From: Hydrolagus colliei
Lineage: Eukaryota
Reading direction: 5' to 3'
Assembly: GCA_035084275.1 (NCBI GenBank)
Contig: CM068756.1
Location: 14,818,001-14,882,000 of the forward strand
Length of the DNA: 64,000 nt
Shown: positions 246-49,493 of the stretch, piece after piece
Layout: the number at the start of each line of letters is the position of its first letter
How positions within the stretch are numbered: position 1 is the first letter of the stretch
Program-made: the position numbers and the translations under genes
The notes under the pieces: generated by a model
What the model saw: the letters and a program-made list of their open reading frames with translations, nothing else
Database searches by the model: none
Told to the model about the DNA's origin: nothing

Positions 246-2319
246 AGAAGGCTTTGCCAAGAGGGAGCATCTACATGAGGATTGATGTAACTGTGTCTCA
301 AATCTGTAAAGTAAATACCTGTTGATTTACTGATTACAGTGCTATCTGCTGACTTATTGAGTGTTGAAATACTAACAGTTATAGTTTCCAACAAGTCGAC
401 AAAGCAACTTGTACGGAAGTGTGCATCTCAGGAAAAAATAAGATCTACCCTCTTCTGTGGGAAGGGAAAATGACTAACCCAGTTATTAGCGTCTTTTTTT
501 CGCTGCAAATAACTTTTTAAATCTAATAGTTCACACCTCAACAATCTGTCCAGCCACCATTCTGTAAGATTGCTGAAGACATTGAGCTACTTGTACAACA
601 ACAACAGCAAGCAGAACAAAATAACATTTGTTTGGTGCCTTTCATGTTGGGAGGATTTTCCTGGCGTAACACCTTGTAAAGATCCTACTGTTATAAAGAA
701 TATTTGAAAATAGGTTAACATGCTCATTTCTAGGAAGACAGTAGCAAAAAATAACCAATTGAAAAATGCAAAGTCTGAAGGGGGGGAATAGAATCAACTA
801 AAGAGAGAAAGGTGGTTCTTTACACAGAATACAAAATTTAAAAAAGTCATAATTTAGATTATTGAAAATTAACTATTTGAAGGATTGTTGAAGGATGTTT
901 GAAGGATTCTTCCAGTTGTGTACTAATCATATCATTAGATACAGCGCTAATAACACAAAAGGTTGAAATGCAATTATTCTCACGTATTATTGCATATTTC
1001 AGACAGTAGGATATTGCAAGCATTTAAGAAGTTAAGAAGATCAACATGTTGGGAAAAAAAATCTTCTTTCAAACTTAGTCATAGGTGCACCTGAACCTGT
1101 CCATTTACCGTTTCAGCTGCAAAATATGAGCTCAAGTCCAAACATTGCGTTTGACCAGTGAAACCTGCTTCTCCAGAGAGAGGAGTGCTTCAAACAGAAC
1201 TGATCTTAAATCACAACTTTATCTGTCTCATATTTATCACAAAATCTTCCCTCTTAACACAAAATTTATTCTACTCTCCACCCCGTAGTAGTCATGAAAG
1301 TTAAGGGTTGCAGAGAAGAGCAACTCTGTGTCAGAAGTCACATCCAAGCAACGATTTTTGTTGGTGGATTTATGTTTCTTTCACATTGCAATAAATGAAA
1401 TGTAAAGAGGGAGGCAAATCTACAACATACATCAAGCAGGGCCGTACGCAGGATTTTTTTTGGGGGGGTGCGAATTGCTAGTGATGGGACCAACAATGGC
1501 CGGGGGCTTGCGGGCTGCCCCCGAAGCCCCCTCGAGGTCTCCGACGTTTTACACAGTTTAAGGTCTTATTTAATCGGTTCAGAAGATCCAATATGAACGG
1601 TAAATGTTTCATGCCCTTGGTGTTTAAGAGCATCATTATTTATTCAGTGTTTATATTTTCCCCGGTAGTCCGTGTCTAATTGGGAAGGTCGAATGTGTTC
1701 GCCGATAAAAGCAAACACGATTGTTGACTCGATGATGTAAGGAATGCGAACGATAAAGTAAATTACAATCCAATTAACACAGTACAATGACGAATGCTTG
1801 ATAAATGTATGCGTATAGAGAAAATGATCATAAACTACAGATTGACGGTAATTAATAAGTTGTTCTGCATTGTTATCCTAAGACTAAATTTCTTTCGGAC
1901 TGTAATGAACAATAATGTAAGAGTAAAGTATGAATGATGTGCTCAGATATTCCAGCAAAGCAAATTTTATAAAAGACAAGAAAATATACAGAAACTGAAA
2001 ATCAGTGTCAAACAGTTAATTCACACGTGTTACAAGCCTGTTATCAGCATTATCCTGAAAATATCGTTGAACTGTGAGCAATAGTGTAGTTAGTTTTTAT
2101 TTATTTATTTAGAATCAAAATTAAAGGCATCAAGCAATACTGATCTGACGAAAAAATACTTGAAAAAATAAGGGAGGGGAAATTAATTCTTTAATAGCGT
2201 TCCGTATTCGAGACGCCTCGGTCGCTTTGAAGCCAATACGTCAACCGCTCTACCAATATCGATTTCCATATTATAATGAATGTGCATTAACGCGAGGGCT
2301 GAAAGTCGCTCCTAAACGG

Positions 2320-2610
2320 AGCAGAATGCTGGACACTTAGGCAAACCTCGACCAGGAGATTAGGTGACTCGTGAGGTATATACCAGGCTTCTAAGAGACG
2401 CCCTGAACGTTTACTGGCGACAGCATCTGACAAATAGTGAGCTATATGGTACACTACCACACTGGTATCACAGACATTACCGCAGAGGCGTCTTAGGTTT
2501 AGCGGACATAGCTGGAGAAGCCGGGAGGAAACTGTCCATAGCCCTACTATCCTATGGGAACCATTGCACGGTCACAGAACACGAGGTAGACCGACCCTAA
2601 CCTACCTCGC
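2320..2610 (+). pseudogene. RTE-clade LINE ORF2 C-terminal fragment carried inside the transposon
   Basis: ECWTLRQ..YTRLLRDALNVYWRQHLTNSELYGTLP, then frameshifted RRLRFSGHSWRS..ILWEPLHGHRTRGRPTLTY; typical RTE post-RT C-terminus. Confidence 0.8.
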
Positions 2611-2974
2611 TACATGAAATGCACGGATTATATTATTATTCAAAGAGAGAAAGAGTGACTTTCGGAGGAGTCACGTTGAAGAGATTTGTGTAGGAAGAGC
2701 TGTTGCTTTGCAGACTCGACTGCACCTGTCCTTTATATCCCGCTGGTGTGAGGCAGCAGTTCTGGGGACCTCAACTCTAACAGGTGCAGGTTAACAATCC
2801 TTTAAGTTATAGCCAATTACGTGACACTGCCCACAAACCCTGAAAAGAAATCTCAGTTGTCAATCAGTCAGATATGCAACCTCGACCTTGGGAATGTCTT
2901 CAGATTCAGAGGCACTGAGTAGGAGGGAAAGAAAGTTTCCCACAGGTGATAGAAGACAGCAGCATCACCTGGCG

Positions 2975-3372
2975 AGTCGCCTGGCACAGTGAATAGCACT
3001 CTGGCCTCTGAGTCAAAAAGTTGTGGCTTCAAACCCCACGTCGGCACTCGGTATCACACAGAGGAAGCTGACACTTCAATGTGGTGCTGTGGGGGGGGGG
3101 GGGGTTAGAGGCTGTTCTTTTGGTTGAGATGCTGAACCGAGGTCTGATCCGTCTGTTTAGATGGATGTGAAAAGATCCTCTGACACTACTCGAAAAGCGG
3201 AGGGAAGTCTCTCTCCTGTTGTCCTGGCCAACAAACGCCCCCAAATAAAATCGGTGACTCACTCCATCGGTGTTTGTGGGACAATCCTGGGCAAAAACTG
3301 GCCACTTTACAGTACGTTCTGTGAAGCCTCTGGGCTGTCTCGACAGTGTACTAAGGCACTATTATCAATTGC
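2975..3372 (+). mobile_element. tRNA-headed Deu-domain SINE nested in transposon copy 1
   Basis: A-box TGGCACAGTG, B-box-like GGCTTCAAACC (GGTTCAAACC in copy 3), Deu core ..CCGTCTG..GGATGTGAAAAGATCC..GTCCTGGCCAA, and an L2-like tail. Confidence 0.75.
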
Positions 3373-4896
3373 TAACATTATCAGATTAAAATACGATTTC
3401 AGCTTCCACAAAGTGGTGCTACCTTTTTATGTAGTGACTGTATACGGGATGATTTCCGATTGACACACCACGTGGAATAGGCGCTAAAGCATTAGGCCTA
3501 CGTCCATGAGTATTTTTTTTAAAGATAGGCATTCCCGTCCAGACACATATAACTTTTTTGTTGGGTTCTCAAAAGCTTTAATTTCTCAGAAGCTTGTAAA
3601 TATGTTGTCATTGTTTGCTAGCATTACAGTCACACCTCTCAAAACTTGAGTCATTTTTACTTACGGTGATCAGATGAAAAGATGATTTTAACTCCAGAAT
3701 TGGTGCTGCCCCTTGTGGCTGTTTACGGGATGATTTCCAAACGAGGATTTGAGTCTTGGCGCCTATGTTTATCCAATCACGAGTCACAGACTCGCCGCGT
3801 CATGGACTGGTCTATCGACGCGGTATGTTTTGGGTAGACGCCGATTCTGGTGCGCGACTCGATAATTTTATATTAATACTAAATCATTCAAAGATGTGTG
3901 TTTATAATTTATACATAGTTTTGAAGAACTGATTGTTGCACAAATGTTCAATAAATTTACTTCGTATTTAAATTTGATAAAAAAATGCAATTCTCTACCC
4001 CGGAAAATGTGGACCTTTTATAATTTGGGGGGGTGCTTACGCACCCGTCGCACCCCCCCTGCGTACGGCCTTGTCAAGTCAGTTCTTGCCCTGACTGATT
4101 CATTCAGGATATGAATTTGATAAGCCCTTAATGTTTGATGGTTAACATGCTTGGATTTGGTGTTGTCTATGAATGAATTGACACTCTTCCTTACTATAAG
4201 TGTGGATATAACATTGAAACAAATACTTCAGATTAAAAGAACTGTTGACAATTGGTAAAACGGTGACAAGGTCTGCAGTGCCAACCTGTGGTATTTTGAG
4301 GGATAAGGAGCGTTTGGGGTAGAGGACGGTTCAAACCCCACATTATTTCCTTCAACCACCAGCTGGTTGCTAATATTAACATTATTAATAAACTATCACA
4401 AGATTCCGCAGAAATTACTGATAAATGTGTGTTTGAGGGCAAGTTCATATGGGTTCTTTGATTAATTACTCTCAGCCGACTCAAGGGAACCATTCAGGCT
4501 GCTATTTTGGTATAGTCTAACATTAATTAGAAAATACTCCTAAAAGCCATAGATAAAAGGCTACTTGATAATAATAATCCATACATTTGATGGAGCGCCT
4601 TAGTGTGTTTTTTTGATGTCTCATCCGAAGGATGACATCTCCAAGCCTGCAGCATTGCCTCCAATAATATACTGGGATAACAGTCAGGACCATGGCATCC
4701 TAAATCTACTGCTAAAACACAAGCATAACAAGAAGGAAAAAATATACCATGAGTGATATAGGTTATAGGTGATAGAAAACCAGGACCAGTGAATTTATAT
4801 GTGAAAGAATGGTGTTGGACAACATAACAGAAGTGCTTTGAATTCAATCAGAACCCACTGTAGAGACCAGTACAGTGTGCAGATGATGCAACTGCT

Positions 4897-9620: not shown

Positions 9621-10739
9621 AACTATCTAAGCACAAAAACAAGTCTCTGTGTCACTATTCAGCTTGAGTGTTTTTTGCAACCGGAAATGTTGTTTTGAGA
9701 ATCAAGGCATAGAAACATGAAAAATAGAAACACAGATTTACACACTTTGAGAAGCAATTAAAAGAAAAGCCGCTGATAGATTAAAAAAATATCAAAATCA
9801 ACTGCGTTATATTATTAATCTGAGACATTGAATCACTCGCAATGGAATTATTTATTGACAATTTTAAACGCAGCAGATCGATTACAATTTTAACACTTAG
9901 TTTTTTCAGGTTAGTTTTATTTTGGCATTTGAACCGTTCAACACCAGTACCACAATTTTCCCTCTGTTTTGTATGAATTGTGCATTATTTTGTTGATTCT
10001 ATCTTAAGGTAGTGTCTGCCAACTGTTTTTTCATGAATGCTGAAGAAACAGTGACAAGTGGCGACTGATTCATGTGATTTATGTTTTTTTTTATTGAAAG
10101 GCTAAATGAATATGTTCCACAAAATTGAAGTTGGTAACTGTTATATTCGGGTTTCAATTTCGTAGCAGATAAAGGGCAATTCAACCCTCTTTGTGTGGCA
10201 TACAACTGACTAGTTACTTTTAAAAACGTTATCCGATTAACAAAGTAATAAATGCAGTTACGGTATGTTTGAAACTGGTACAAAGAGCATTGCAACACTA
10301 GACTGACGTGTCACATCATTCGGTTAAAATTACATTGAATATACACCACTATCAGTTTCTGTGCTTGTTGCATTACTTGTATCTTGGTTTACTGGAGATA
10401 GCGGCTGTTCCTGCTCCTCCGTGGATTCTCACATGGATCTCTGCACACTCTGTATTCTTAACAGTACTTTTAGGTTTTCATGTTTTATCGGAGGGATGTA
10501 AATACAGAACAGTATATGTCAGCTTGTTCCCAGTTGTTCTTTGATTGGTCTGGAAAGGCAATGTTTGAGAATTTAATTATATTAATTCGGTTTGCTCAAC
10601 ACATTTCAAAAATCAAATATTTGACAATTATTATTTGAAGTACGACTTGCTCCATAGCCCATTTGATAAAGGCACTGCTCCTTACAGAACTGAGCTGAAC
10701 AGAATCCACTAGGCACAATTCTGTTCCATATTGGATTAG

Positions 10740-13700
10740 TTACACATCAACAGCAACTGTGGGCTGGGAAAGTAAAGCGAAAATCAACCAGGGTAGCAGG
10801 AGTTCAAATGGTTTGGCATTGAAGTGCTTGTGTTTTGCTTGGATTTGCCACAAATCCAATTGTGTTTGGATTGCCACAGTCATTTGGTCACCCAGGTCAG
10901 AGACAGAGAGGGGAAAGATAGAGAAGAAAGAAAGATTAACAACAGAAATATACAAACTAGTTGACAATAAACAGTGAAGTGAGATCCATTATATATAATA
11001 CAGCAAGTAATATACTGAGGTATACCTGGTCATACACAATGTTCTCGTCTTGTTTTTTCGGTCTTGTTTTTTTTTTTGCAACGATTCAAATCCATTTCGG
11101 AGTAAGTCACCATCTCATTCCCTGTTCCCTGCAGCTTCTGTAAAACAGAATATGATTCAGTGTTGCCATCACTGGTCTGGAGATTCCTGGGTAAGTATTG
11201 ATAAAAATGCCTCCACAAATAAATATTTTCACCTAAGTTTAAAATATTCAACACATAGCTTCTTATGACCGTGAGAATCCACCCAGTTTAGCAACTGTTC
11301 TAACTGTTCGGTAATCTACAGAATATGGGGTGTACATTTCCATATATGAGTGATGTCCCAGTGCCTCATATATTGACACACACAATAACAAATTTTACAC
11401 AACAAAAAATTCATGTGACTGTGCAGTGGCAGATTGCCAGCATCATATAACAGCCCAGGACACGGCCAGAGAATGAAGATTAGATGGCAAAGAAAGATTA
11501 ACCACAAAAATGTACAAACTAGTTTATTGTAAACATTGAAGTGAGGTCCACTATATATAAGGTAGCAGTTACTAATCTGAGATATACCTTTAGGTACACA
11601 ACATTCTCATCTTGTTTTTTAGGTCTTGGAGATTTTTTGCAACGATTCAAATCCATTTTGGCGTAAGTCACAGACTCAGTGCCTGCTCCCTGCAACGCCT
11701 GTAAAACAGAATGTGATTCAGTGTTGCCATCACTGGTCTGGACATTGCTTGATAAGTATTGATCAAAATGACCCCACAAATAAATAGTTTGACCTATGTT
11801 TCAAATATTTAGCATATAGACTCCAAATACTTTAGCAGTGACAGTCAATCAGTGTGGCAATTATTCATTGATGTACAGAAATATGAGGTGTACATTTCCA
11901 GATATGGTTGATATTACAGTGCCCCATTGATTGACGCAAACAATAACTAGTCTTACACAAAAATATCACATTGTCTTTCCAGTAGAACATCGTAACCAAC
12001 ATATCACAGCCCAGGATAGTGCCAGAGAGTGAAGATTAGAGGATATAGAAAGGTTCACCACACAAATATACAAATCCTCTTACAGTAAAAAATTTACTGA
12101 ATTTACATAATTCAATTGGACAGAAACGATTTCTGTTTTAAATATGCATTGCTCAAATATACCTGGGCATAAACAGTCCCCTCCTCTTGCCTTTTAGGCT
12201 TTAACTTTTTCTTGGAACTGGTTAAATTCAATGTGACACAAGACACCAGCTCATTCTTTGCTCCGTGGTTTGCCTATAAACAGAATGTGCTCACAAGAAA
12301 ACTATGTTGCATTCATAAATAATAAGTGAGATACATTATATAAAATATAGCAAGTAACATTCTGAGGTATACCTGGGCATACACAATGTTCTCGTCTTGT
12401 TTTTTCGGTCTTGGTTTTTTTTTGCAACGATTCAAATCCATTTCGGAGTAAGTCACCATCTCATTCCCTGTTCCCTGCAGCTTCTGTAAAACAGAATATG
12501 ATTCAGTGTTGCCATCACTGGTCTGGGGATTCCTGGGTAAGTATTGATCAAAATGCCCCCCACGAATAAATATTTTCACCTAAGTTTAAAATATTCAACA
12601 CATAGTTTCTTATGACCGTGAGAATCCACCCAGTTTAGCAACTGTTCTAACTGTTCGGTAATCTACAGAATATGGGGTGTACATTTCCATATATGAGTGA
12701 TGTCCCAGTGCCTCATATATTGACACACACAATAACTAATTTTACACAACAAACAATTCATGTGACTGTGCAGTGGCAGATTGCCAGCATCATATAACAG
12801 CCCAGGACACTGCCAGAGCATGAAGATTAGAGGGCAAAGAAAGATTAACCACAAAAATGTACAAACTAGTTTATTGTAAACATTGAAGTGAGGTCAGGTC
12901 CACTATATATAATGTAGCCGTACTATTCTGAGATATACCTTTATGTACACAACATTCTCATCTTGTTTTTTAGGTCTTGGAGATTTTTTGCAACGATTCA
13001 TATCCATTTTGGCATAAGTCACAGACTCAGTCCCTGCTCCCTGCAACGCCTGTAAAACAGAATGTGATTCAGTGTTGCCATCACTGGTTTGGACATTCCT
13101 GGATACGTATTGATCAAAATGCCCCACAAATAAATAGTTTGACCTATGTTTCAAATATTTAGCATATAGACTCCAAATACTTTAGCAGTGACAGTCAATC
13201 AGTGTGGCAATTATTCATTGATGTACAGAAATATGAGGTGTACATTTCCAGATATGGTTGATATTACAGTGCCCCATTGATTGACGCAAACAATAACTAG
13301 TCTTACACAAAAATACCATATTGTCTTTCCAGTAGAACATCGTAACCAACATATCACAGCCCAGGATAGTGCCAGAGAGTGAAGATTACAGGATATAGAA
13401 AGGTTCACCACAAAAATATACAAATCCTCTTACTGTAAAAAATTTACTGAATTTACATAATTCAATTGGACAGAAACGATTTCTGCTTTAAATATGCATT
13501 GCTCAAATATACCTGGGCATAAACAGTCCCCTCCGCTTGCCTTTTAGGCTTTAACGTTTTCTTGGAACTGGTTAAATTCAATGTGACACAAGACACCAGC
13601 TCATTCTTTGCTCCGTGGTTTGCCTATAAACAGAATGTGCTCACAAGAAAACTATGTTGCATTCATAAATAATAAGTGAGATACATTATATAAAATATAG

Positions 13701-16700
13701 CAAGTAACATTCTGAGTATACCTGGGCATACACAATGTTCTCGTCTTGTTTTTTTGGTCTTGGTTTTTTTTTGCAACGATTCAAATCCATTTCGGAGTAA
13801 GTCACCATCTCATTCCCTGTTCCCTGCAGCTTCTGTAAAACAGAATATGATTCAGTGTTGCCATCACTGGTCTGGAGATTCCTGGGTAAGTATTGATCAA
13901 AATGCCCCCACGAATAAATATTTTCACCGAAGTTTAAAATATTCCACATATAGCTTCTTATGACCGTGAGAATCCACCCAGTCTAGCAACTGTTCGGTAA
14001 TCTACAGAATATGAGGTGTACATTTCCATATATGGGTGATGTGGACTTTGGCATAGAGAGCACTATTTCCAAGTTTGCAGATGATACAAAGTTAGGTAGG
14101 GTAGTAAATGGTGAGGAGGACTGTAACCAACTGCAAGCAGACATACACAGATTGGTGGAATGGGCTGACATGTGGCAGACGGATTTTAATGTGGATAAGT
14201 ATGAGGTGATACACTTAGGTAGGAAAATTTATAGGAGGCAATATAGACTTGGTAGCTCAATTTTAAGTGGGGTGAACGTACAGAGAGATTTGGGTGTTCA
14301 AGTAAGCAAATCATTAAAGGTATCAGGGCAAATAGATAAGGCAGTATGACAGGCATTTGGTGCACTGAGCTTTATCAGTAGGGGCATAGAGTATAAGAGT
14401 AGGGAGGTTATGGTTAGTTAATCTATACAAAACACTGGTTAGGCCTCAGCTGGAGTACTGCGTTCAGTTCTGGGCCCCTTATTTCAGGAAGGACATTAAG
14501 GCACTGGAAAGGGTGCAGAGGAGATTCACGAGAATGATACCAGGAATGGGTTACCTTAGCTATGAGGACAGGCTGGAGAAGTTAGGACTTTTCCCATTAG
14601 GGCAGAGAAGGTAACGCGGAGACCTGATCGAGGTCTTCAAGATCATGAAAGGTTTTGACAGCTAGATAGGGAAAAGCTGTTTCTACTGGTAGGTGTGTGT
14701 GTGACCCGTGGTCACATTCTTAAGATATCTACCAAAAGAAGCAGAGGGGAGGTTAGAAGAATTTTTTTTACTCAGCGAGTTGTTCGAATTTGGAATGATC
14801 TGCCTGAAAGGGTAGTGAGGTCCGATTCGATAGCAGCTTTTAAGAGAGAACTAGATAGGTATCTGGGGAAGATGGGTTTGCAGGGTTATGGGGAGAAAGC
14901 TGGTGATTGGGGTTAATGAAAATGACTTGCACGGTCAAAGAGCCGGCACAGACTCGATGGGCCGAATGGCCTCCTTCTGTGCCGTAATATTCTATGATTC
15001 TATGTCCCAGTGCCTAATATATTGACACACACAATAACTAATTTCATACAACAAAAAAATCATGTGACTGTGCAGTGACGGTTGCCAACATCATATAACA
15101 GCCCAGGACACTGCCAGAGAGTGAAGATTAGAGGACAAAGAAAGATTAACCACAAAAATGTACAAACTAGTTTATTGTAAACATTGAAGTGAGCTCCACT
15201 ATATATAATGTAGCAGTTAATATTCTGTGATATACCATTGCGTACACAACGTTCTCATCTTGTTTTTTAAGTTTGGGAGATTTTTTGCAACGATTCAAAT
15301 CCATTTTGGCGTAAGTCACGGACTCAGTCCCTGCTCCCTGCAGCGTCTGTAAAACAAAATGTGATTCAGTGTTGCCATCACTGGTCTGGACATTCCTGGA
15401 TAAGTGTTGATCAAAATGCCCCCACAAATAAATAGTTCGACCTATGTTTCTAATATTTAGCATATAGACTCCAAATACTTTAGCAGTGACAGTCAATCAG
15501 TGTGGCAATTATTCATTGATGTACAGAAATATGAGGTGTACATTTCCAGATATGGTTGATATTACAGTGCCCCATTGATTGACGCAAACAATAACTAGTC
15601 TTACACAAAAATACAATTTTGGCTTTCCAGTAGAACATCCTATCCAACATATCACAGCTCAGGACAGTGCCAGAGAGTGAAGATTACAGGATAAAGAAAG
15701 GTTAACCACAAAAATGTACAAACTTTCTGATAGTAAAAATTTAATTCAGTCCCATTGGTTACTGAAGTGATATAATTCAATTGGATAGAAAATATTTCTC
15801 TTTTGAATTTGCATTGCTCAAATATACCTGGGCATAATCAGTCCCCTCCTCTTGCCTTTTAGGTTTTAAAGTTTTCTTGGAACTGGTTAAATTCAACGTG
15901 ACACAAGACACCGGCTCATTCATTGCTCCGTGGATTGCCTATAAAACAGAATGTGATCACAAGAAAACTATGTTGCATTCATATATAATAATAATCCTTG
16001 CATTTGATATTGCGGTTTTCACATCTTCTAGACGTCTGAAAGCGCTTCACAGAATATAATGTAAAGTGAATTGACTGTATCTTTGTGGTTGAGATGGGCA
16101 GCCAAATGTGCACAGCAGCGTCCCACAGTGTCCCACAGTTGTGGATTGAAATGAGCAACTACAAAAAATTTGGACGGATTATTATTAGGCATGTGGAGTA
16201 AGGAAACTTGCATATGGTTTCACCCTAATCTGCCTGGATTTGGACACGGTCTCACACTTGTAAGGCGAGTGCTCTAATCACTGAGCCACAGGAGCTCCAC
16301 ATAAAGTATCTTTCATGCCTGAATGTTATTCTGAGTCATTTAGAGATTGTTGTTTCTATTGCTTTGTAAATTGTTGAGTACGTATCCATCGGAAAGCCCT
16401 CGATAATAAATACTTTTACTAAAGCTGATCATTTTTAATGTATAGCTTTTACACACAGTATTACATTTCTATTGAATATTGTGTCACGAATTGCACCAAA
16501 CTGTGTGGTTCATTATTCAATATTAATTCGAGGCCACACAGATAGACAGAGGGAAGATATTCAACGCGTTGTTGTTTCTTAATCATGAACCATATCTGTC
16601 CAATACTATAATTCTGTTTCCAGCTGAAATATCCACTGAAATCAATATAAGAAATGTACCTGTTCTTCGCATTGGCCCGATAAGGTCTGGTTTCCTCGTG

Positions 16701-19700
16701 AGCCTTGGAAAGAAATTCAAAAAATATTCATCTAAATTCTACGTAAATAATAACAAATATATTTTGGTTACACCAATATTATGTCGAGCATTGGTTAACC
16801 CACTTGGAAAAGATGCCAAGGAATGAATGTGGTGCAGAATAGGTTTACCAGGATGATAGCAGTGGATGATGATATGCCCTATGAGCAGAAACTTTCGCCT
16901 TGTAAGATACCTACAAAATGGGAAATGTGGAGGTTTATTTTTCTCTTTTCCTCAACTATCACACTCAACCAGGTATTTCATATCCTAACTAGAAGGGTAC
17001 TGTAGTTATGGTGTGGAATACCACGTTTCATGTGATGGTTTGGGCAAATTACACATTCAGTTTCAAGAGAACACGAGAGGAAATAACCTAAATCAATTCA
17101 ACTGCAAGGATATTTTCCATGATTATTTTGAAATTGTCACGCAGTTTACTGTTAAGAAATCCTGTTTATCTATATTGCAAACAGAATCCTAAATCTGAGT
17201 TCTACAATCGAATTTCTGCCGATTGATCCTTGATACTTTTCTCAAATTATATACTGTACACACTCTGGATTTTGATTTATCGGGCTCAATTTCTGAATTT
17301 GCTCATGAGACAAATGTGCAACAGTGAAGAGGATTGCAATTTCATTGAAGTGATATGAAAACCAGCACATTGTACAGAGACATAGAGATGGCAGGTGAAA
17401 CTGGGCATTTGTGGATGTGTGACCGGTTGGGTGGTTTCACAGAGTGCTGAGGGGAATGTGGCCCAGGCGGATTAGAAAATAATACATTTTGTAAAATAAT
17501 ACATTGTCTAAAACTGTTTAATTCTAGCCGTAAGTGGAAACAAATAGGTGAATGGGATGTGAATTATTTAAGGAGAGAACAGAGACATGGTTGCTGAAGC
17601 TCAATCACAGCACATTTGAGATGTTCGTTGCATGGCAATTTCTAGTTGAACGTGCAGCCAAATCAATACAGGGTGAGTTTCTGTGAGGACATTTCTATAT
17701 GACAATTAATCGCTTCACGTAAATCATTTGGGTAGCTTTACAGGTGACTGCTCTCTCATTGTCACGTCTCGTCTATGAAATGAATTATTCTATCAAATTA
17801 ACGTAAATCTAATAGCAATTTGTCTTACCTTTCATTATGTGTAATTGGCATTCATTCCCCAATATGATCAAAAGTAGCAGAAATATCAGCCCTCCAACTA
17901 CACATCCAGCGATCAGTCTATATTTCTCTGCAAAAACAGCACGAACTGAATATGTCAGTGTCTCCAGCAATGAGTTATACATTCATTACCTGCATCATAT
18001 CAGAAATGTTTAAGCAGAAACAGTTTTTTTTTAAATGAACATTTGTTAAAGAAAATTTAACAGTGTGAGAGACGAAAGAGTAAATTCAAAGCGTGTCAAG
18101 CGAAGTTGAATATTATTGTACACAAATATTTCAATCCAGTATTCGGCTAGAAATGTATTTGATTATAGAATTATATATTGCAATTTTCTGTGCAAATAAG
18201 TGTAAATATATTTTGAAAAGTAATTTAGTAATCAACAATTGTATTTAGGAAATTACATTCGTTGGAACTGGAAACTGTAATACGATAAGTTTACCTACAA
18301 TTTGAAATAAAAAGGTGTTTAAGTAAAAAAGAAAGTCAGTAAGACAGGTAGGCATCCTACCATGCAATCCTTCCTTGTGTTTAGGAACGGCGTAATGGGC
18401 AACCACTGGATTCGGGTGGCAGACATGAGATGCCAGACAGGTATAAACAACCCCGCTCTCTAAAGGCTGGGTCTCTTCCATAGAGCTGGAGACTTCGTAA
18501 AGTCCATTCGAATTTATTTCTTTAGTGAGATTGATCCCAGTTCTAACTTCATTCCCATCTTTAAACCACACGAGCGTTATATTCCCCGGGGAAAACGCAG
18601 CCGTTTTACACACAAGAGACTGAGGCTTTGATGAATCACTTTCAGAATCTCTGGGGATTATCTTCAGCGGGGTCGGGGACACTGTAGGGCAGAGAATGGA
18701 GCAGAATCGTGTCACTTGTGATCAATTGGAATATAAACATTATTCTAATTTGAATTGTATAATAACTATTTCCTTGGAGGGTTTAGAAAGTTAAGGTACA
18801 TAATTTTAACATTGCGATTTTCAGAAATGGCGCGGAAATCTTCCCATCACATGGAATAATTTTGTTGTGAAATCCAGTCCACAGCGGCTTCAGATGCAGA
18901 ATTAAGTGGAATATTTAACAGCGAGGCAGACCATAGCTGTAAAGAGTTTGGGGAGAGGTGAAGACATTGGAGTAAAAGCTCTGCCACCTTTCTGCAGCAG
19001 AAAAACCTGTAGTTTAGGAGCATAAAGTTCCCGAATTCATTCCCGAAATCCATCTTCCTCCCCCTTCCGTCTCTACAGTTAATCCCATCTGAATACACAC
19101 CTCTCTCAGTGTCTTTTCGGCCACTCTCCCATCCCAGGTGGATTATAGCTCCGGCTGCCATGAATTCTTTGCCAAGCGCTTTAAGATGCTCTCCCAACAG
19201 TGAGCTATATTAACGTAAATTCAAGTAAATCTACAGTGAAGATCTCAGGCAAATCATGTCACTTACCACAAACAGTTAATTTCGAACCAGTTCCATTAAC
19301 CGCTCTATTACCCGGAATGACCAGGCTACAGTAATACATCCCAGAGACCTGGATGTCTGCAGCCAGGAGATTGAAGAAGGCGCTTCTTGAACCATTGAAA
19401 CCAAATTCTTTCGTTTGATCCTCTCTGAGGAATCCATTCTCTCCCATCTTCCACCAGTGAACTCTCACACTCTTGGTGCTATGGAAGGCACAGGAGAACG
19501 TCGCCTTCTCACCTCTGTTGACAATGATATGATCCGGTTGTTGTGTCACTGTGAACACTGTACAGTCAGCAGCTGTCAGAAATAAATTCAAACATTGTTT
19601 TAAAACAAAATACAACGAAATACACACAGAGCAAGTTAGAGATGCTCTTCGCTTATTCATGGATGTAAATAAAATGGGAACTTGATCTTTATTCTGTTTC

Positions 19701-19788
19701 TGAAAACTGATATATTGAATAATCACAAACCTTTAGAAATGATCCACACTGTGAGAGACAGACACTGAAACACAACACTCGCCAACAT
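10740..19788 (-). CDS. Receptor gene A: non-rearranging VJ-C1-TM IgSF receptor with expanded tyrosine-motif tail (SIRP/NKp30-like architecture)
   Basis: Exons, all GT-AG and phase-compatible: L 19788-19731, V 19572-19267, C1 18681-18361, TM 17927-17829, linker 16703-16660, nine tail exons (see repeat feature), candidate last exon 10763-10740 (PTVAVDV*). The last tail exon is 112 nt (+1). Confidence 0.8.
11026..15938 (-). repeat. Triplicated ~1.35-kb unit containing three paralogous 111-nt phase-0 cytoplasmic exons (X,Y,Z)x3
   Basis: X 15938-15828, Y 15346-15236, Z 13832-13722, X 13623-13513, Y 13049-12939, Z 12483-12373, X 12273-12163, Y 11698-11588, Z 11137-11026. Each has a pyrimidine-rich ..(t/c)ag acceptor and a gtata donor; introns are duplicated too. 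Confidence 0.9.
14043..15004 (+). mobile_element. 5'-truncated CR1 LINE
   Basis: ISKFADDTKLG RT motif, CR1 3' end GAATGGCCTCCTTCTGTG..ATTCTATGATTCTATG; it interrupts GTGATGT|CCCAGTGCC, which is intact in the sister repeats. Confidence 0.92.
15985..16300 (-). mobile_element. tRNA-derived SINE with L2 tail
   Basis: Full head-to-tail match to 22808-23110 in reverse orientation. Confidence 0.85.
16660..16703 (-). CDS. Gene A 44-nt phase 1-0 juxtamembrane exon (GSRGNQTLSGQCEEQ)
   Basis: ctttccaag| ... CAG|gtacat; same length and phase in B (31221-31178) and C (50890-50847). Confidence 0.8.
17829..17927 (-). CDS. Gene A transmembrane exon (EKYRLIAGCVVGGLIFLLLLIILGNECQLHIMK)
   Basis: tttttgcag| acceptor, G|gtaag donor, ~20-aa hydrophobic stretch, paralogous to B and C. 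Confidence 0.85.
18361..18681 (-). CDS. Gene A Ig C1-set exon
   Basis: LVCKTAAFSPGNITLVWFKDG...GLYEVSSS...YTCLASH: C1-set CxxxxFxPxxIxxxW and YxCxxxH; 321 nt, phase 1-1. Confidence 0.92.
19267..19572 (-). CDS. Gene A Ig V-set exon with germline-joined J-like G strand
   Basis: VTQQP..FSC..HWW..DIQVSGMYYC..NGTGSKLTV; 306 nt, phase 1-1; no RSS seen. Confidence 0.92.
19731..19788 (-). CDS. Gene A leader exon (MLASVVFQCLSLTVWIISK)
   Basis: ATG at 19788, G|gtttgt donor, hydrophobic; ETS site ACTTCCTG at 19881-19888 upstream. Confidence 0.8.
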
Positions 19789-20330: not shown

Positions 20331-21124
20331 GATGGAAATTTTGATTTTTAAGCGTGCTTAACCCTCACCTCTTCCCCACCCAGTCACAGTGCGACAAGCA
20401 CCGCGTTAAGCTATCGGAGACTTCAAACCGTGTGAAGGATGCTGTATACATGTTGTTGTTTCATTCCATAACGGTATGAGCGAATGCTTATTTTAGTCTT
20501 CAACTTATTTGTTAAACAAATCTTTCGTTTATACAAATGTCAATGAACCCAACCATTCGTTACTAGAAGAGAAGCCATTAAATAGTTCTCAAGAGAATGA
20601 AGCTGACATTGACATAGATCAACTTGATGGTGAAGCTCCCAGCTCAAGGCGTTTAATGCAACATGTGCCCGAGTCCATTACATTTGACTGATTCCAGAAC
20701 AGAAGGTTCTGTTGATTCCATGGGTTTAATTTCCCAATTAATGTAAAAATCTATGCACGAAACATTGTTATGAATATTACTGTTGAATCAACCTGTATTT
20801 TGTTTGATTTTCTCCCGGTTTCCTGGCCAACGACCCCGGGTAAAAGTTTTTTTTTTATTCATAAAAAACGTAAAATGCCGCGAATAATGGAAATCTGAAA
20901 TCGCTGGCAACACTAGGCGGCATCTATAGAGAAAGGAAAAGTGGATAAACCTTTAGGGTCCATCACCCTTCACCAGAGCTCCCAGCGATTTCTGTTTTTG
21001 GTTTCTTTCTAATTTATTTCATGACTGTCTGTAAGACATTGCTGTGCAAAATTGGCTACCTTGTTCCCCTACTGGAGCCTATCAAAAAGTACACTAAATC
21101 CTGAGAAATGCCATCGCCATGCTT

Positions 21125-22170
21125 CAAACCAACTCCGTGCCCACCTCTCCTCCCACTCCCTCTTCCAACCGCTCCAGTCCAGTTTCCACCCTGCCCACAA
21201 TACGGAGACTGCTCCTCTCGATCTGCAACCAGGGCTCCCTCTGCCTCCTTATTCTCCTGGATCTGTCCACTGCGTTTGACAGAGTCAACCACACCATCCT
21301 CCTCCACCACCTGTCCTCCGTCATCCACCTCAGTGGGACCGCACTCGCCTGGTTCGAGTCCTACCTCACAAACCGCCAGCAGTACATCTCCACAAACGTC
21401 TTTTCCTCGCGTTGTTACACAGTTACCTGCGGGGTACCCCAGGGATCCATCCTTGCCCCCCTCCCCTTCCTCATCTATATGCTCCCTCTTGGGAATGTCA
21501 TCTACAGACATGGGACACACTTCCACATGTACGGGGATGACACCCAACTCTATTTCTCTACTTCACTATGCGACCCCCCAGACCCCTGATGTACTGTCCG
21601 CCTGCCTGTCAGACATCAGGAGCTGGATGAGCGCAAATTTCTTGCAGCTAAATGTTGACGAGACGGAGGACATACTCTTTGGCTCTCGTCCATGTCTCGT
21701 TCGCATGACTCTCACCTGCTCCAGCTTCCCGGTCTGTCCCTAAAACTCTCCGAGCCTGTGTACAACATTGGCATCAGGTTCGATCCCCAACTGTCCTTCC
21801 TGATATGGGGGACCATATCACGTCCCTTACCAGCACCGCCTTCTTCCACCTCTGACAGATCGCCCATCTCCGGCAATACCTCACCCCAAAAGCCGCTGAA
21901 ACCCTGGTCCATGCCTTCGTCACCTCTCGGCTGGACTATTCCAATGCCATCCTCGCCGGTCTCCCCTCCACCACAATCCATAAAATCCAACTCATTCAAA
22001 ACTCTACGCCCGTATACTCACCTGCACCAAACTTCACTCCACCATTACCCCAGTCCTTGCCAGACTTCACTTGCTCCCTATCCCAGAGAGGATCAACTTC
22101 AAGATCCTCACCCTTGTCTTCAAATCCCTCCACTCCTCTCCAATCTCCTACCTCTCTGACCTTCTCTCTC
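21125..22170 (+). mobile_element. L2 LINE RT region, frameshifted
   Basis: LLDLSTAFDRVNHTILL, GVPQGSIL, YGDDTQLY, WMSANFLQLN motifs spread over shifted frames. Confidence 0.9.
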
Positions 22171-28565: not shown

Positions 28566-29434
28566 TGTTGCGCATTATTGTTTTGATTCTATCTTAAGAT
28601 AGTGCATACCAACTGATTTTTCACGAATGTTGCAGAGCCAGAGTCACGAGTGGAGATGGATTCATGCAATTTTTGTATTTCTTTGAAAGGCTGATTGAAT
28701 ATGTTCCACAAAATTGAAGTTGGTAACTCTTAAATCTAGGTTTCAATTTCGTAACATATAAAGGGCATTTCAACTCCCTTTGTGAGGCATGCGACTAACT
28801 AGTTACCTTTCAAAATCTTATTCAATTAACCCAACTAAAGCTTTTCCGCAAACAAGTATGGTTATACAGATATAATCAGCAATATTCTCCAAGAATTTTC
28901 CCAAAGACTTTTAATGTAACAAAGTAATAAATGCAGTTATGTTTGAAACTGGTACAAAGAGCATTGCATCACTAGACTGATGTGGCACATCTTTCGGTAA
29001 ATTGAAAAACTACATTGAATATACACCAATATCAGTTACTATGCCGTTTGCTTTATTTGGATCTTGGTTCCATGGAGATAGCTGCTACGCCTCCTCAGTG
29101 GTTTCCCCCATGGATCTCTGCACACTCTGTATTCTTAACAGTACTTTTAGGTTTTCATGTTTTATTGGAGGAATCTAAATCCAGAACAGTATATGTCAGA
29201 TTGTTCCCAGCTGTTCTTTGATTGGTCTGAAAAGGCAATGTTTGACAATTTGATTATATTAATTCGGTTTCCTCAGAAATTCGTACAATGCATTTCAAAA
29301 ACTCTCCTCAAATATTTGCCGAGTATTATTTGAAGCATGACTTGCTCCATAGCTCATTTGATAAAGGCACTGCTCCTCACAGAACTCAGCTAAACAGAAC
29401 CCATTAGACACAATTCCATTCTATATTGGATTAG

Positions 29435-32400
29435 TTACACATCAACAGCTAATATGGGCTGGAAAAGTAAACCAAAAATCAACCAGGTAGCAGATGTTCC
29501 AATGATTTGGAATGATTTTTGTTTTGCTAATTGCCGCAGTCATTTGGTCACCCAGGTCAGAGACAGAGAGAGGAAAGATCAGAGGAGAAAGAAAGATTAA
29601 GAACAGAAATATACAAACTAGTTGACAATAAACAATGAAGTGTGATACACTATATATAATGTAGCAAGTAATATTCAGATGTATACCTGGGAGTATATTA
29701 CTTGATTGTCTTGTTTTTTAGGTCTTGGAGTTGTTTTGCAATGATTCAAATCCATTTGGGCATAAGTCATCGACTCAGTCCCTGCTCCCTGTAGCGTCTG
29801 TAAAATAGAATGCGATTCAGTATTGCCATCACTAGTCTGCAGATTCCTGGATAGGTATTGATCAAAATGCTCCCAAAAATACATAGTTCCACCAAAGTTT
29901 CAGCATATGTTTAGCATATAGATTCCAAATCTTTTAGCAGTGAAAATTAAACGTGTGGCAATTATTCATTGATCTACAGAAATATGAAGTGTACATTTCT
30001 CTCTACGGTTGATATCAAAATGCCTCATAGATTGACACAGATAATAAGTAGTCTTACATAAAAATACTATTTGGGCTTTATAGTGGCAGATTGTCATCAA
30101 CATATCATAGCCCAGGACAGTGCCAGAGAGTGAAGATTAGAGGACCAAGAAAGGTTAACCACAAAAATGTACAAATACCCTTACAGAAAAAATTTAATTG
30201 AGTCCCAATTATTACTGAAGTGATATAATTCATTTGGATACAAATTCTGTTCTAAATTTGCGTTGCGTCCAGCGCATTGGGATGTCCTCCCGCCGTGAAA
30301 GGCGCTATATAAGTGCAATTTTGTTGTTGTTGTTGATGCTCAAATATACCTGGGCATAAACAGTCCCCTCCTCTTGCCTTTTAGGTTTCAAAGTTTTCTT
30401 GGAACTGGTTAAATTCAATGTGACATAAGTCACCCCCTCATTCTTTGCTCCGTGCTTTCCCTGTAAAATAGAATGTGATCACATGAAAAATAATAATATG
30501 TTGCATTCATAAATAATAATAATAATCCTTGCATTTGAAATAGCGTTTCTCACATGTTCTAGACATCTCAAAGCGCTTCACAGAATATACTGTAAAGTGA
30601 AGTTGCATTTGTGGGTGAAACGTGGCAGCCAATTGCGCACAACAGTGTCACACAAACAGACGTGGATTTCAATTGCTATGAATAGGGAAGGATTATTAAG
30701 AAGCATGTGGAGTAAGGAAACTTTCCCAAGCTTTCAGCCTGATCTGCCTGGATTTGAACACAGGTCGCATGCTTGTAAGGTGAGTGTTCTAACCACTGAG
30801 CTACAGGAGCTCCAAATAAAGTGCCTCTCAAGCCTGAATCATGTTCTGAGGCACTGATAAATTGTTGTTTCTATAACTCTGTAAATTGTTGAGTAAGTAT
30901 CAATTAGAAAGCCCTCGATAGTAAATACTTTCACTAAAGCCGATCATTTTTAATGTATAGCTTCCAAATATATTACAAGCAGTGTTACATTTCTAATGAA
31001 TATTGTGTCACCAATTGCATGAAACTGTGTGGTTCATTATGCAACAATAATTCGAGGCCACACAGATAGACAGGGGGAAGATAATGTTGTTATTTCTTAA
31101 TGATGAACCATATCTGTGCAACCCAATAATTCTGTTTCCAGCTGAAATATCCACTGAAATCAATATAAGAAATGTACCTGTTCTTCGCATTGGCCTGATA
31201 TGGTCTGGTTTCCTCGTGAGCCTTGGAAAGAAATTCAAAAAATATTCATTTACATTCTACGTAAATAATAACAAATATATTTTGGTTACACCAATATTAT
31301 GTCGAGCATTGGTTAACCTACTTGGAAAAGATGCCAAGGAATGAATGTGGTGCAGAATAGGTTTACCAGGATGATACCAGGGGATGATGATATGCCCTAT
31401 GAGCAGACACTTTCACCTTGTACGATACGTACAAAATGGGAAATGCGGATGTAATGAGGTTTACTTTTCTCTTTTCCTCAACCATCGCCCCCAACTGGGT
31501 ATTTCATATCCTAACTAGAGGGTAGTTCCGGTATTGAATACCTCCGTTGAATGTGATGCTTCGAGCAAAATACACATTCACTTTCAAGAGAGTATTGCAA
31601 GAAATAATCTAATACGTTTCAACTACAAGAGTAATTGGGAAAGATAGGTAAATTGGGACTGACTCCAGTGCTCTAAAAAAGCAAGCACAGATGCAATGGA
31701 TGGGATGGGTTTCTTGTGTGCTGTAAATTTGTATGGTTATACGCAGCTCTACGTGTACCTTGTCTTCAGTTTCAGCGGTCTTAGACCCTCCAGACTCAAT
31801 TCCATCATGAGCTGGGGTATCCATCTATGAAGTGCCAATCATTTGGGGTCTTCCACAAGAATTGAACAACGATATATAAATGTGTATTTGTATTGTATGG
31901 TTACAGGTTTCCCTATTTCCCTATGTTAAATATCTCCCTTTTTAAAAATGTCCTTATTGAAAATAGAATGTGAACTTCTTTGTCACATTTCCTATAATTA
32001 TTTTGAAATTGTTACGCAATTTACTGTTAAGAAATCCTGTTTATCCATATTGCAAACAGAATCCTAAATCTGAGTTCTACAATCAAATTTCTGCCGATTG
32101 ATCCTTGATACTTTTCTCAAATTATATACACACACTCTGGATTTTGATTTATCGGGCTCAATTTCTAAATTTGCTTATGAGACAAATGTGCAACAGTGAG
32201 GACAATTGTAATTTCATTGAAAACTAGCACATTGCACAGAGACATAGCGATGGCAGGTGAAACTGGGCATTTGTGGATGTGTAACCATGCTGAGCGGAGT
32301 GTGGCCCAGGCAGAATCTGCATTTTATAAAATAATACATTGTCTAAAACTGTTTAATTATCACGGTAAGTGGAAGGAAATAGGTGAATGCAAGGTGAATT

Positions 32401-35106
32401 CTTTAAGGAGGAAACGGAGACATGGCCTTCTATGCTGTGAATTGCTGAAGCTCAATCACAGCACGTTTGATACATTCGTTGCATCGCAACTTCCAATGAA
32501 ACGTGCAGCTGAATAAATACAGGGTGAGTTTCTGTAAGGACATTTCCATGTGGCAATCAATCGCTTCACATTATTTCTTTGCGTAGCTTTACAGGATGAC
32601 GGTATCTCTCTCATTGTCACCTCTAGTCTATGAAATGAATCATTCTATTAAATTAAAAATTTACAAATCACGTCAATCAAATAGCAAGATCATAGAATCT
32701 TACGGCACAAAAGGAGGCCATTCGGTCCATCGAGTCTGTGCCGGCTCTTTAAAAAGAGCAATTCAATCCCACTCCCCGGCTCTCTCCCCACAACTGTGCA
32801 AACCCGTCCTCTCCAAATAAAAATATATCTTACCTTTAATTTTGTGTAATTGGCACTGTTTGCCAATAATGATTAAAAGCAGCAAGAGTACCAGACCTCC
32901 AACTACACATCCAGCGATCAGTCCATAGTGAGGCTGAGGGCCATTCTCTACAGGAACAGCATGAACTGAATATGTTAGTGTCTCCAACAATCAATTACAC
33001 TTTCTTTACCTGCATCACATCAGAAATGTTTAAGCAGAATTTTTTTAAAAGGACACAATTGAACAGAGTAAGAGGGGAAAGAGTAAATTTAAAGAAAGTC
33101 AAACTAAGATGAATGTTATCGGCAACTCCTACACCCTCCCTCCCTCCCTCCCCTCCCCGCCTCGCCTGTCCTCAGTTCGGGTCTGAAGCACTGAAAATCC
33201 AGCGCCTTGGGATGTCCTCCTGACGTGAAAAGCGCTACACAAGTGTAATTTTGCTGTTATTGCTGTTGTACAAACATTTCAATCCAGTATTCGGGTAGAA
33301 AATTACATGACTATAGAATTATATCATTACAATTTTCTGTGCAAACAAACGTAAATGTATTTTAGTAAAATGTTAGTTTTTAACCACAACAATTGTAGTT
33401 CGAAAATCACACCGGTTGGAATAAAAAACGGGAATTTAATAAATTTAACTACCATTTCGTGTAATGAGGTGTTTAAGAGACAATGAATGGCAGCAAGACA
33501 TGTTAGGCATCCTACCATCCAATCCTGTGTTGGGATTAGAAACGGTGTAACTGGCAACCAATGGATTCGGGTGGCAGACATGAGATGCCAGACAGGTATA
33601 AACAACCCCGCTCTCTGGAGGCTGAGTCTCTTCCACAGAACTGGAGACTTCGTAAAGTCCATTTGAATTCTTTTCTTTCGTGACATTGATCCCAGTTCTA
33701 ACTTCATTCCCATTTTCAAACCACGTGAGCGTTATATCCCCCGGGAAAAACGCAGCCGTTTTACACACAAGAGTCTGAGGCTTTGATGAATCACTTTCAG
33801 AATCTCTGGGGATTATCTTCAGCTGGGTCGGGGACACTGTAGGGCAGAGAATGGAGCAGAATCGTGTCACTTGTGATCAGTTGGAATATAAAACTTTATT
33901 CTAATTTGAATTGTATAATAACGATTTCCTTGGAAAATTATAACAACGAATCTGGTTTGTAATGGAAAGAATATGATTTTTGCGGATTTAAGAATGTTAA
34001 ACGGAGTGTTGCAGTTTTAAGGCTGGCTTTGTTTGCAATGATGTGCGCAGTTTAGGAGATTTAGTCGCCTGTTTGGTGGTGTGGGTGGGTGGGGGGGGGG
34101 GTAGAAGGTACACAACAGAGTACACAATCTTAACATTGAGGCTTTCAGAAATGACGCGGAAACCTATCGTTTCATGGAATAATTCGGTTGTGAAATTCAC
34201 ACGAGGTCGGAGATGCAGAATTAAGTGGAATACTTGAAATGGAAACCGATCATAGCTGTAAAGAGTTTGGGGAGAGGTGAAGAAATTGGAGTAAAAGCTC
34301 TGCCACCTTTCTGCAGCAGAAAAACCTTTAGTTTGGGAGCATTAAGTTCCCGAATTCATTCCCGAAATCCATCCTCCTCCTCTTCCGTCTCTACAGTCAA
34401 TCCCATCTGAACACACACCTCTCTGAGTGTCTTTTCGGCCACTCTCCCATCCCAGCTGGATTATAGCTCCGGCTGCCATGCATTCTTTGCCATGCGCTTT
34501 AAGATGCTCTCCCAACAGTGAGTTATATTAATGTAAATTTAAGTAAATATACAGTGAAGATCTCAGCCAAATCATGTCACTTACCACATACAGTTAATTG
34601 CGACCCAGTTCCATTAACCGCTCTATTACCCGGAATGACCAGGCTACAGTAATACATCCCAGAGACCTGGATGTCTGCGGCCAGGAGATTGAAGAAGGCG
34701 TTTCTTGAACCATTGAAACCAAATTCTTTCGTTTGATCCTCTCTGAGGAATCCATTCTCTCCCATCTTCCACCAGTGAACTCTCACACTCCTGGTGACAG
34801 GGAAGCCACAGGAGAACGTCGCCTTCTCACCTCTGTTGACAATGATATGATCCGGTTGTTGTTTCACTGTGAACACTGTACAGTCAGCCGCTGTCAGAAA
34901 TAAATTCAAACATTGTTTTAAAACAAAATACAACGAAGTACACACAGAGCAAGTTAGAGATGCTCTTGGCTTATTCATGGATGTAAATAAAATGGGAACT
35001 TGATCCTTGTTCTGTTTCCGAAAACTGATATATTGAATAATCACGAACCTTTAGAAATGATCCACACTGTGAGAGACAGACACTGAAACACAACACTCGC
35101 CAACAT
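29435..35106 (-). CDS. Receptor gene B: VJ-C1-TM receptor with ITIM-type tail; apparently intact
   Basis: L 35106-35049, V 34890-34585, C1 33836-33516, TM 32947-32834, linker 31221-31178, X 30460-30350 (VTYVTL; TVYAQ), Y 29797-29687 (MTYAQM; VIYSQ), candidate last exon 29458-29435 (PILAVDV*). No stops, and all phases match. Confidence 0.85.
30510..30815 (-). mobile_element. tRNA-derived SINE, at the same intron position as the gene A copy (15985-16300)
   Basis: Same body and same flanks upstream of exon X, so the insertion predates the A/B duplication. Confidence 0.8.
32834..32947 (-). CDS. Gene B transmembrane exon (ENGPQPHYGLIAGCVVGGLVLLLLLIIIGKQCQLHKIK)
   Basis: ttcctgtag| acceptor, G|gtaag donor, hydrophobic stretch. 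Confidence 0.87.
33516..33836 (-). CDS. Gene B Ig C1-set exon
   Basis: LVCKTAAFFPGDITLTWFENG...YTCLASH; 321 nt. Confidence 0.92.
34585..34890 (-). CDS. Gene B Ig V-set exon with J-like end (NGTGSQLTV)
   Basis: 306 nt, open, seven amino-acid differences from gene A V. Confidence 0.92.
35049..35106 (-). CDS. Gene B leader exon
   Basis: Same peptide as the A leader; ETS site at 35199-35206. Confidence 0.8.
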
Positions 35107-48910: not shown

Positions 48911-49493
48911 GCAATGTAATTACAATAGTTATATTTAAGAAAGTTAGCAGATGCGTACAAACATTTTTTCACAATTAAGTATGGTTATATAGGTATGGTG
49001 AGCAATAATTTCCAATAATTTTCCTGAACACATATTATTTAAAAATCTAATAAATGCAGTTATGTTTGAAATGGGTGGAAAGAGCAATGCAGCACGAGAC
49101 TAACATGGCACATCATTTGGTAAATTTAAAAACTACATCTAATATACACCACTATCAGTTTCTGTGCCTGTTACATTACTTGGATCTTGGTTCCCTAGAG
49201 ATAGCAGCTGCTCCTTCTCTATAATTTCACACATGGATTTTTGCATACTCTGTATTCTTAACAGTACTTTTAGGTTTTCCTGGTTTTTTTGGAGGGATGT
49301 AAATCCAGAACAGTGTACATCACATTGTTCCCAGCTGTTCTTTGATTGGTCTGAAAAGGCAAAGTTTGACAATTTCATCAATTTATTTTACTTCAGTTTT
49401 CAAAAATCTACTTTGACATTTGTCAATTATTATCTGCAGCATGGCATGCCCCATACTTCCTTTGATAAAGACACTGCTCCTCACAGAACTGAG

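Follow-up and report, generated by a model that had tools for sequence, protein, structure and literature searches.

We present a computational analysis of 64,000 nucleotides (nt) of Hydrolagus colliei DNA (assembly GCA_035084275.1, contig CM068756.1, positions 14,818,001 to 14,882,000), termed the window, in which three paralogous genes, A, B and C, lie in tandem on the minus strand. Gene A is probably a SIRP-like receptor with one V-type and one C1-set immunoglobulin (Ig) domain, whose tail has grown by duplication of a module exon and could serve as a docking site for SH2 domains. The nine-exon tail array of gene A is real; modular tails are ordinary in its receptor family, and this one is unusually long. 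Anatomy, open reading frames (ORFs), duplication history and family membership are matters of observation and are described first; all coordinates are window positions.

Anatomy of gene A and its neighbours

The exons of gene A are given below in transcript order, namely leader, V, C1, transmembrane (TM), 44-nt link, nine tail exons and terminal exon T.

19731-19788, minus strand: leader exon (MLASVVFQCLSLTVWIISK), ending in phase 1; found by an ATG...G/GT scan and its in-frame join to the V exon
19267-19572, minus strand: V-type Ig exon with a J-like GNGTGSKLTV end, phase 1-1; stop-free stretch and splice-aware reading
18361-18681, minus strand: C1-set Ig exon, phase 1-1; Pfam C1-set, 8.9e-12
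17829-17927, minus strand: TM exon (LIAGCVVGGLIFLLLLIILG); splice-aware reading
16660-16703, minus strand: link exon, (G)SRGNQTLSGQCEEQ, 44 nt, phase 1 to 0; located with Callorhinchus peptides
15828-15938, minus strand: tail exon Z3 (AIHGAMNEPVSCVTLNLTSSKKTLKPKRQEEGTDYAQ), 111 nt, phase 0-0; AG-111 nt-GT scan
15236-15346, minus strand: tail exon Y3 (...VTYAKMDL...VVYAM), 111 nt; same scan
13722-13832, minus strand: tail exon X3 (...VTYSEMDL...IVYAQ), 111 nt; same scan
13513-13623, minus strand: tail exon Z2, 111 nt; same scan
12939-13049, minus strand: tail exon Y2, 111 nt; same scan
12373-12483, minus strand: tail exon X2, 111 nt; same scan
12163-12273, minus strand: tail exon Z1, 111 nt; same scan
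11588-11698, minus strand: tail exon Y1, 111 nt; same scan
11026-11137, minus strand: tail exon X1, 112 nt with a +1 shift, reading ...CKKKNKTEKTRREHCV and then TGA 4 nt before the donor
10478-10549, minus strand: coding part of terminal exon T (TNQRTTGNKLTYTVLYLHPSDKT, then stop), common to genes B and C

The tail array spans 15938-11026 on the minus strand, in the transcript order Z-Y-X repeated three times. The scan for AG, 111 nt open in frame 0 and GT returned exactly eight cassettes, all of phase 0 and free of stops, and the AG/GT splice sites are kept by all nine tail exons. Comparison of the tail exons within the window by tblastn gave E-values of 1e-14 to 1e-23, so their similarity is not due to chance. 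Since the tail exons are symmetric (111 nt, phase 0-0), any subset of them preserves the reading frame by arithmetic. A preliminary description, made from the letters of the window, had placed nine paralogous tail exons here, eight of them exact stop-free 37-codon cassettes, and had called them modular and symmetric with retained splice sites, all of which was borne out on the minus strand. Its (X-Y-Z)x3 layout was right in the three repeats and wrong in the order, which in the transcript is Z-Y-X (the earlier X is Z here).

The remaining exon, X1, reads TGC-A11-C where X2 and X3 read TGC-A9-CC, a net gain of one base. Because the change sits in a homopolymer of 11 bases (T11 on the plus strand, 11067-11077), a sequencing error is conceivable, and the extra base may be one. 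Full splicing of gene A as assembled gives 607 amino acids (aa) with 14 tail tyrosines, ending inside X1, and skipping of X1 gives 595 aa with 15 tail tyrosines, in agreement with the 14-15 tyrosines counted earlier.

The exons upstream of the array are of phase 1 and the tail exons of phase 0, so a phase-changing exon is required. This is the 44-nt link exon, which is also found in gene B (31221-31178), in gene C (50890-50847) and at a Callorhinchus milii locus (L001, 17824-17868). A conserved block in gene A at 16875-16909 was considered for the same role and rejected, being donor-like but with no open exon. The leader peptide recurs in gene B at 35106-35049. The V exon matches Pfam Ig_3 at 7e-11 and V-set at 5e-4, the latter with 20.6 bits against the Pfam cut-off of 26, and in genes A and B the V and TM exons are separated by a single C1 exon. 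The TM segment is uncharged, K, R, D and E all being absent, and offers no residue of the kind that pairs with DAP12 or FcRγ. The TM exon is 15 nt shorter than that of gene B (32834-32947, minus strand), and NGPQPH-type membrane-proximal stalk residues are absent from it.

Gene B was modelled with eight exons, the link exon included, and yields a clean ORF of 378 aa, which validates the gene model. The tails of genes B and C are laid out as follows.

29155-30460, minus strand: gene B tail, with Z at 30460-30350, Y at 29797-29687 and T at 29226-29155
49270-50452, minus strand: gene C tail, with Z at 50452-50342, Y at 49915-49808 (108 nt) and T at 49350-49270

Both tails thus consist of Z, Y and T. 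The preliminary description had given them two module exons and four tyrosines; the two modules stand, and the tyrosines number five in each gene, the fifth lying in the terminal exon.

Exon T is a truncated tenth module, followed in gene A by AATAAA signals at 10095, 9921 and 9856. Gene A's only strict ITIM (immunoreceptor tyrosine-based inhibitory motif), LTYTVL, lies in this exon and can be read in frame only when X1 is left out or has a true length of 111 nt. Past the stop of T in genes A and B, the frame continues as KPKSTVKNTECAEIHV with a cysteine in place of tyrosine (A 10430-10478, B 29107-29155, minus strand), a stretch that Callorhinchus proteins read through (...KTEKPKSTVKNTQYAELHV), and in gene C exon T (49270-49350) stops by way of a 1-nt insertion. 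Hence the last tyrosine was lost in all three genes by two routes, through a stop and a Tyr to Cys change in A and B and through an insertion in C.

Genes A and B are 91% identical in their 5' halves and 78-84% identical over the tail region, a contrast that points to conversion, or else age, that varies along their length. The V exon of gene C (about 55545-55722, minus strand) appears to begin at GEKVQFTC, without some 17-19 first-β-strand codons present in A, B and Callorhinchus; gene C may be defective or may encode a shortened V domain. Two other readings, one of bacterial-style ORFs and one of plus-strand ORFs running antisense to the X exons, were set aside, as the minus-strand exons have homologues and splice sites.

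Origin of the tail array

Alignment of the array over 10976-15990 (minus strand) resolves it into three tandem units, one of which carries an insertion.

10976-12325, minus strand: unit U1
12326-13675, minus strand: unit U2
13676-15990, minus strand: unit U3
14043-15005, plus strand: 963-bp 5'-truncated CR1-like fragment of a long interspersed nuclear element (LINE), in the Y3-X3 intron, antisense to gene A and present in unit 3 only

The units lie head-to-tail with a period of 1347-1351 bp (about 1.35 kb) and are 93.5-97.4% identical. U1 and U2 diverge by 2.6% and U3 from the other two by 6-6.5%; altogether, 102 of 1332 aligned sites vary among the three, along with about ten small indels. 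Divergence in exons and in introns, respectively, is 2.4% and 2.8% for U1-U2, 6.6% and 6.9% for U1-U3, and 6.3% and 5.8% for U2-U3. The introns at the unit junctions (X3-Z2, 98 nt; X2-Z1, 99 nt) are alike at both places, each being chimeric between the intron that follows X and the one that precedes Z. Equal period, common junction and graded divergence are the marks of tandem duplication, and the triplication of a 1.35-kb unit proposed in the preliminary description is thereby confirmed.

The insertion in U3 appears in the unit alignment as a 963-nt gap and has a ATTCTATG-repeat 3' end and an ORF with a FADD motif. Its ORFs gave no Pfam match at 0.01, and the assignment to CR1 is suggested by the FADD motif and the octamer-repeat 3' end. 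A second copy of this 3' end lies in the gene B intron beside the TM exon (32689-32819, minus strand).

Genes A and B align colinearly from the link exon through Z3 and again from X1 through T, so that Z3 occupies the ancestral Z position and X1 the ancestral Y position; between them, the array aligns over and over with gene B's Z or Y segments. Exons X and Y are both Y-type and about 20% apart, about as far as either is from the Y exon of gene B, so the duplication of Y to X is old. The ancestral tail would have had the link-Z-Y-T layout that Callorhinchus and genes B and C show. Duplication of the Y exon into Y and X (about 20% diverged) would have come first in gene A, and unequal crossing-over, joining the intron that follows X to the one that precedes Z, would next have generated the Z-Y-X unit of about 1.35 kb that is now present three times.

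Receptor family, module motifs and predicted signalling

The proteins closest to gene A are those of Callorhinchus milii named 'tyrosine-protein phosphatase non-receptor type substrate 1-like' and 'SIRP beta-1-like', with 48-58% identity, and the wider set from C. milii, Heptranchias and Heterodontus matches at E-values of 3e-96 to 1e-44 with 35-58% identity. The best matches thus bear out the earlier view of a SIRP-like receptor. A family-profile search returned 51 proteins, all chondrichthyan V-C1 proteins with no tetrapod SIRP among them, and their automatic names are inconsistent (SIRP-like, NCR3LG1-like, tapasin-related-like, Ig-lambda-like). The literature search on SIRP in cartilaginous fish found nothing specific. 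Members of this family (e.g. XP_007902824, XP_007902825 and P0001-P0006 of Callorhinchus milii; also from Heptranchias perlo and Heterodontus francisci) have the same domain order as gene A, with phase-1 Ig and TM exons, the 44-nt link, 111-nt phase-0 modules, gtata(t/c) donors and a terminal module. At the C. milii locus (L001, encoding P0001), the link exon is followed by Z at 18534-18644 and Y at 19103-19213, both of 111 nt, with gtatat donors and the same acceptor and donor types as in the window, and the introns are about 70-80% identical to those of the window. Gene A differs from the annotated chondrichthyan members in having nine modules plus the terminal one where they have one to five, and in the cysteine that replaces the first tyrosine of its Z modules.

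A 37-column module profile searched against 1.84 billion representative proteins found 21 proteins, of which the real relatives are chondrichthyan members of the family with one to five modules; no annotated relative in that set has a tail near nine modules. No own-species protein or transcript fragment for gene A was found with that profile, or with the full model among 5.8 billion proteins. Smaller repeats of the same kind are known at the protein level: in Heterodontus francisci XP_067906074.1 (P0013), a two-module pair is repeated exactly twice, and the Astyanax mexicanus 'sialoadhesin-like' protein KAG9274582.1 (P0031) has four tandem ...VTY(A/S)E(M/I)D(L/M/Q)K.KKKPK... modules. Both have four modules at most against the nine of gene A, and together they indicate that duplication of tail modules recurs in fish Ig-superfamily receptors. 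In a predicted 'isoform X3' of Heterodontus francisci (P0011), the link exon runs straight into the terminal module, which hints that module exons can be skipped. Predicted isoforms of this shark (P0011, P0010/P0050) also differ by loss of the TM exon, which gives a soluble form, and exon-level variation of the tail may thus already be annotated in the family. The tails of PECAM-1 and CEACAM1 are likewise built from several short cytoplasmic exons, and alternative splicing changes their content of ITIMs, as it could alter the number of tyrosine motifs in gene A; unlike those of gene A, their exons are not tandem paralogous cassettes and are not all symmetric.

Each module comprises 37 aa, with (V/L)(T/A)Y-x-x-(L/M/V)(D/N)L followed by a basic K/P stretch and xVY(A/S)Q, the two tyrosines standing 23 residues apart. 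The preliminary description had set the array beside inhibitory receptors that carry one to four ITIMs or immunoreceptor tyrosine-based switch motifs (ITSMs), and its ITIM reading is weakened here: a motif count found no strict ITIM ([ILVS]xYxx[ILV]) or ITSM in the nine array exons, as against two strict ITIMs in each of genes B and C. All three Z copies of gene A have a cysteine for the first tyrosine (VSCVTL, compared with VTYVTL and VAYVTL in B and C). Exons Y and X carry VTYAKM and VTYSEM, which are ITIM-like with methionine at +3 and also fit YxxM, making six VTYxxM motifs in the array; at +3 of the second tyrosine, the array modules have A, T or K.

The module resembles the bisphosphoryl tyrosine-based activation motif (BTAM) of SIRPα, ITYADLNLPKGKK aligning with VTYVTLNLTSSKK by BLASTP at 7/13 identities (E = 0.002), and homology between the two is plausible. 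Once both of its tyrosines are phosphorylated, the SIRPα BTAM peptide DITYADLNLPKGKKPAPQAAEPNNHTEYASIQTS binds SHP-2 and activates it (PMC5589908), and the earlier view of the tail module as an SHP-docking-like unit is consistent with this resemblance. In a PDB sequence search, SIRPα (2wng, 1e-13) and Ig light chains matched the C1 domain of the gene B protein, which is 86-93% identical to that of gene A in the Ig domains. Mammalian SIRPα (SHPS-1, PTPNS1) shares with gene A a VJ-like V domain followed by a C1-set domain, an uncharged TM segment and two-tyrosine tail modules, with a tyrosine spacing of 24 in the SIRPα peptide and 23 here. It differs in having three Ig domains (V-C1-C1) rather than one V and one C1, two modules (four tyrosines) rather than nine plus the terminal one, and I or V rather than A, T or K at +3 of the second tyrosine.

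Inclusion of all tail exons would be the default expectation, because all 18 splice sites match those of exons used in relatives, and the predicted product is a protein of 595-607 aa with 14-15 tail tyrosines. By its resemblance to the bisphosphoryl unit of SIRPα, the module may engage the tandem SH2 domains of SHP-2 and SHP-1. Phosphorylation by Src-family kinases would then turn the tail into a multivalent SH2-docking scaffold with a valency above that of the five-tyrosine paralogues, which splicing of the symmetric exons could vary. By analogy with SIRPα, it is reasonable to propose that the tail docks SH2 domains in a multivalent and possibly splice-tunable way. If expressed, it would be the highest-valency tyrosine-motif tail for an Ig-superfamily receptor of this kind among the 1.84 billion representative proteins, and gene A with its two five-tyrosine neighbours would form a natural series relating module number to SH2-phosphatase recruitment. 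More generally, the locus points to immune-receptor tails that grow by duplication of phase-0 exons, with the SIRPα-like two-tyrosine module as an exon-sized unit across cartilaginous fishes.

Alternative readings and other elements of the window

Among the alternatives, the one to be taken most seriously, although we consider it rather unlikely, is that the array is a neutral by-product: a fairly young duplication that is drifting or being homogenised, with extra exons that are mostly skipped or add nothing, gene A behaving like B and C or decaying. Several observations weigh against a docking tail maintained by selection, and most of them would be expected under neutrality. The preliminary description had staked its reading on exons diverging at a rate different from that of the introns; taken at face value the two are equal between units (Fisher p 0.79-1.0), and nonsynonymous changes do not accumulate more slowly than those in introns (p = 0.54), and synonymous ones accumulate faster (p = 0.03). 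Along the unit, divergence is unevenly spread, with exon X and the 75 nt upstream of it near-identical in U2 and U3, a pattern that points to gene conversion and not to constraint on the exons in particular. The frameshift of X1 as assembled, the absence of strict ITIMs from every array exon, the loss of the first tyrosine in all Z copies and the LINE inserted inside the array point in the same direction, as do C1 pseudo-exons elsewhere in the cluster, which indicate that its members decay. Apart from neutrality, the match between module and SIRPα is short and weak (hhalign, 17 columns, probability 32%), and a query with the Y2-X2-Z1 junction found nothing among fragments of 61-194 aa, those of 195-318 aa having had no dedicated search.

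Neutrality is opposed by the pattern of change within the exons. The ratio of nonsynonymous to synonymous rates (dN/dS) between U3 and U2 is 0.33 (p = 0.02), so that nonsynonymous changes are under-represented and the equality of exon and intron divergence is softened. A rough neutral expectation is about 1.2-1.4 stops, about 0.9 splice-dinucleotide hits and about 3 exon indels, against 0, 0 and 1 observed, and the rough joint neutral probability of no stop, no splice-dinucleotide hit and at most one indel is about 0.024. The splice signals are the same as those of exons used by relatives, the other exons of gene A are all intact with an open frame of 595-607 codons, and the only disabling change lies in the X1 homopolymer, where it may reflect faulty sequencing. 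On a longer time scale the modules are clearly constrained: X and Y differ with a dN/dS of 0.41 while keeping the ORF, both tyrosines and the splice sites, and comparison with Callorhinchus exons gives 0.18-0.75. In our reading, the Z-Y-X-T tail has long been maintained, and selection for its further triplication is a separate question. Were the extra exons unexpressed or neutral, the array would be an ordinary structural variant in a fast-evolving gene cluster.

A bolder reading goes beyond a SIRP-like receptor with a putative docking tail and holds that the nine-module tail is expressed and selected as a scaffold with 14-17 phosphotyrosines, its valency set by exon inclusion and its output unlike that of the five-tyrosine inhibitory paralogues, given its six VTYxxM motifs and lost strict ITIMs. 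If true, it would amount to a natural experiment in which signal strength is tuned by cassette number; we judge it unlikely at present.

It is improbable, in our estimate, that gene A has changed function and become a multivalent docking receptor for the p85 subunit of phosphoinositide 3-kinase (PI3K), or for another SH2 protein, instead of an inhibitory recruiter of SHP-1 and SHP-2. YxxM is the consensus of the class IA PI3K p85 SH2 domains, and the array with six VTYxxM and no strict ITIM contrasts with genes B and C and their two strict ITIMs each. However, methionine at +3 is a conservative replacement of the L or V found in Callorhinchus and shark modules (VTYAKVDL, LTYAALDL), VTYAKM is also present in gene C and in those Callorhinchus proteins whose strict ITIMs are retained, and p85 prefers other +1 residues than the A and S of these sites.

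Lastly, an assembly artefact, whether haplotypes falsely placed in tandem or a repeat joined wrongly, is most improbable: units 1 and 2 are 97.4% identical with the same junction and immune loci are often heterozygous and difficult to assemble, but the window is without any N or gap, 102 of 1332 sites and about ten small indels distinguish the units, U3 stands 6-6.5% from the others, far above normal heterozygosity, and the 963-bp LINE occurs in U3 alone, in keeping with the earlier view that the triplication is genuine.

Elsewhere in the window, C1-set-like relic exons lie on the minus strand at 24374-24177, 38111-37869 and 8287-8183. They are variously interrupted by a stop in frame, altered by a deletion or frameshift, or heavily decayed, with no matching V exon detected, and are probably pseudogene remnants of further members between or beside genes A, B and C. 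Near the ends of the window, an inverted repeat pair of 2.6 kb is 98.8% identical (1437-4073 and 61833-59186), with partial copies at 58781-57597 and 57230-56523 (96.6-97.5% identical); it probably represents a young family of transposable elements. Retrotransposon fragments are scattered at 21098-21586 (plus), 46958-47620 (plus), 14043-15005 (plus) and 32689-32819 (minus), the first of which matches Pfam RVT_1 at 8e-15 and the second weakly.

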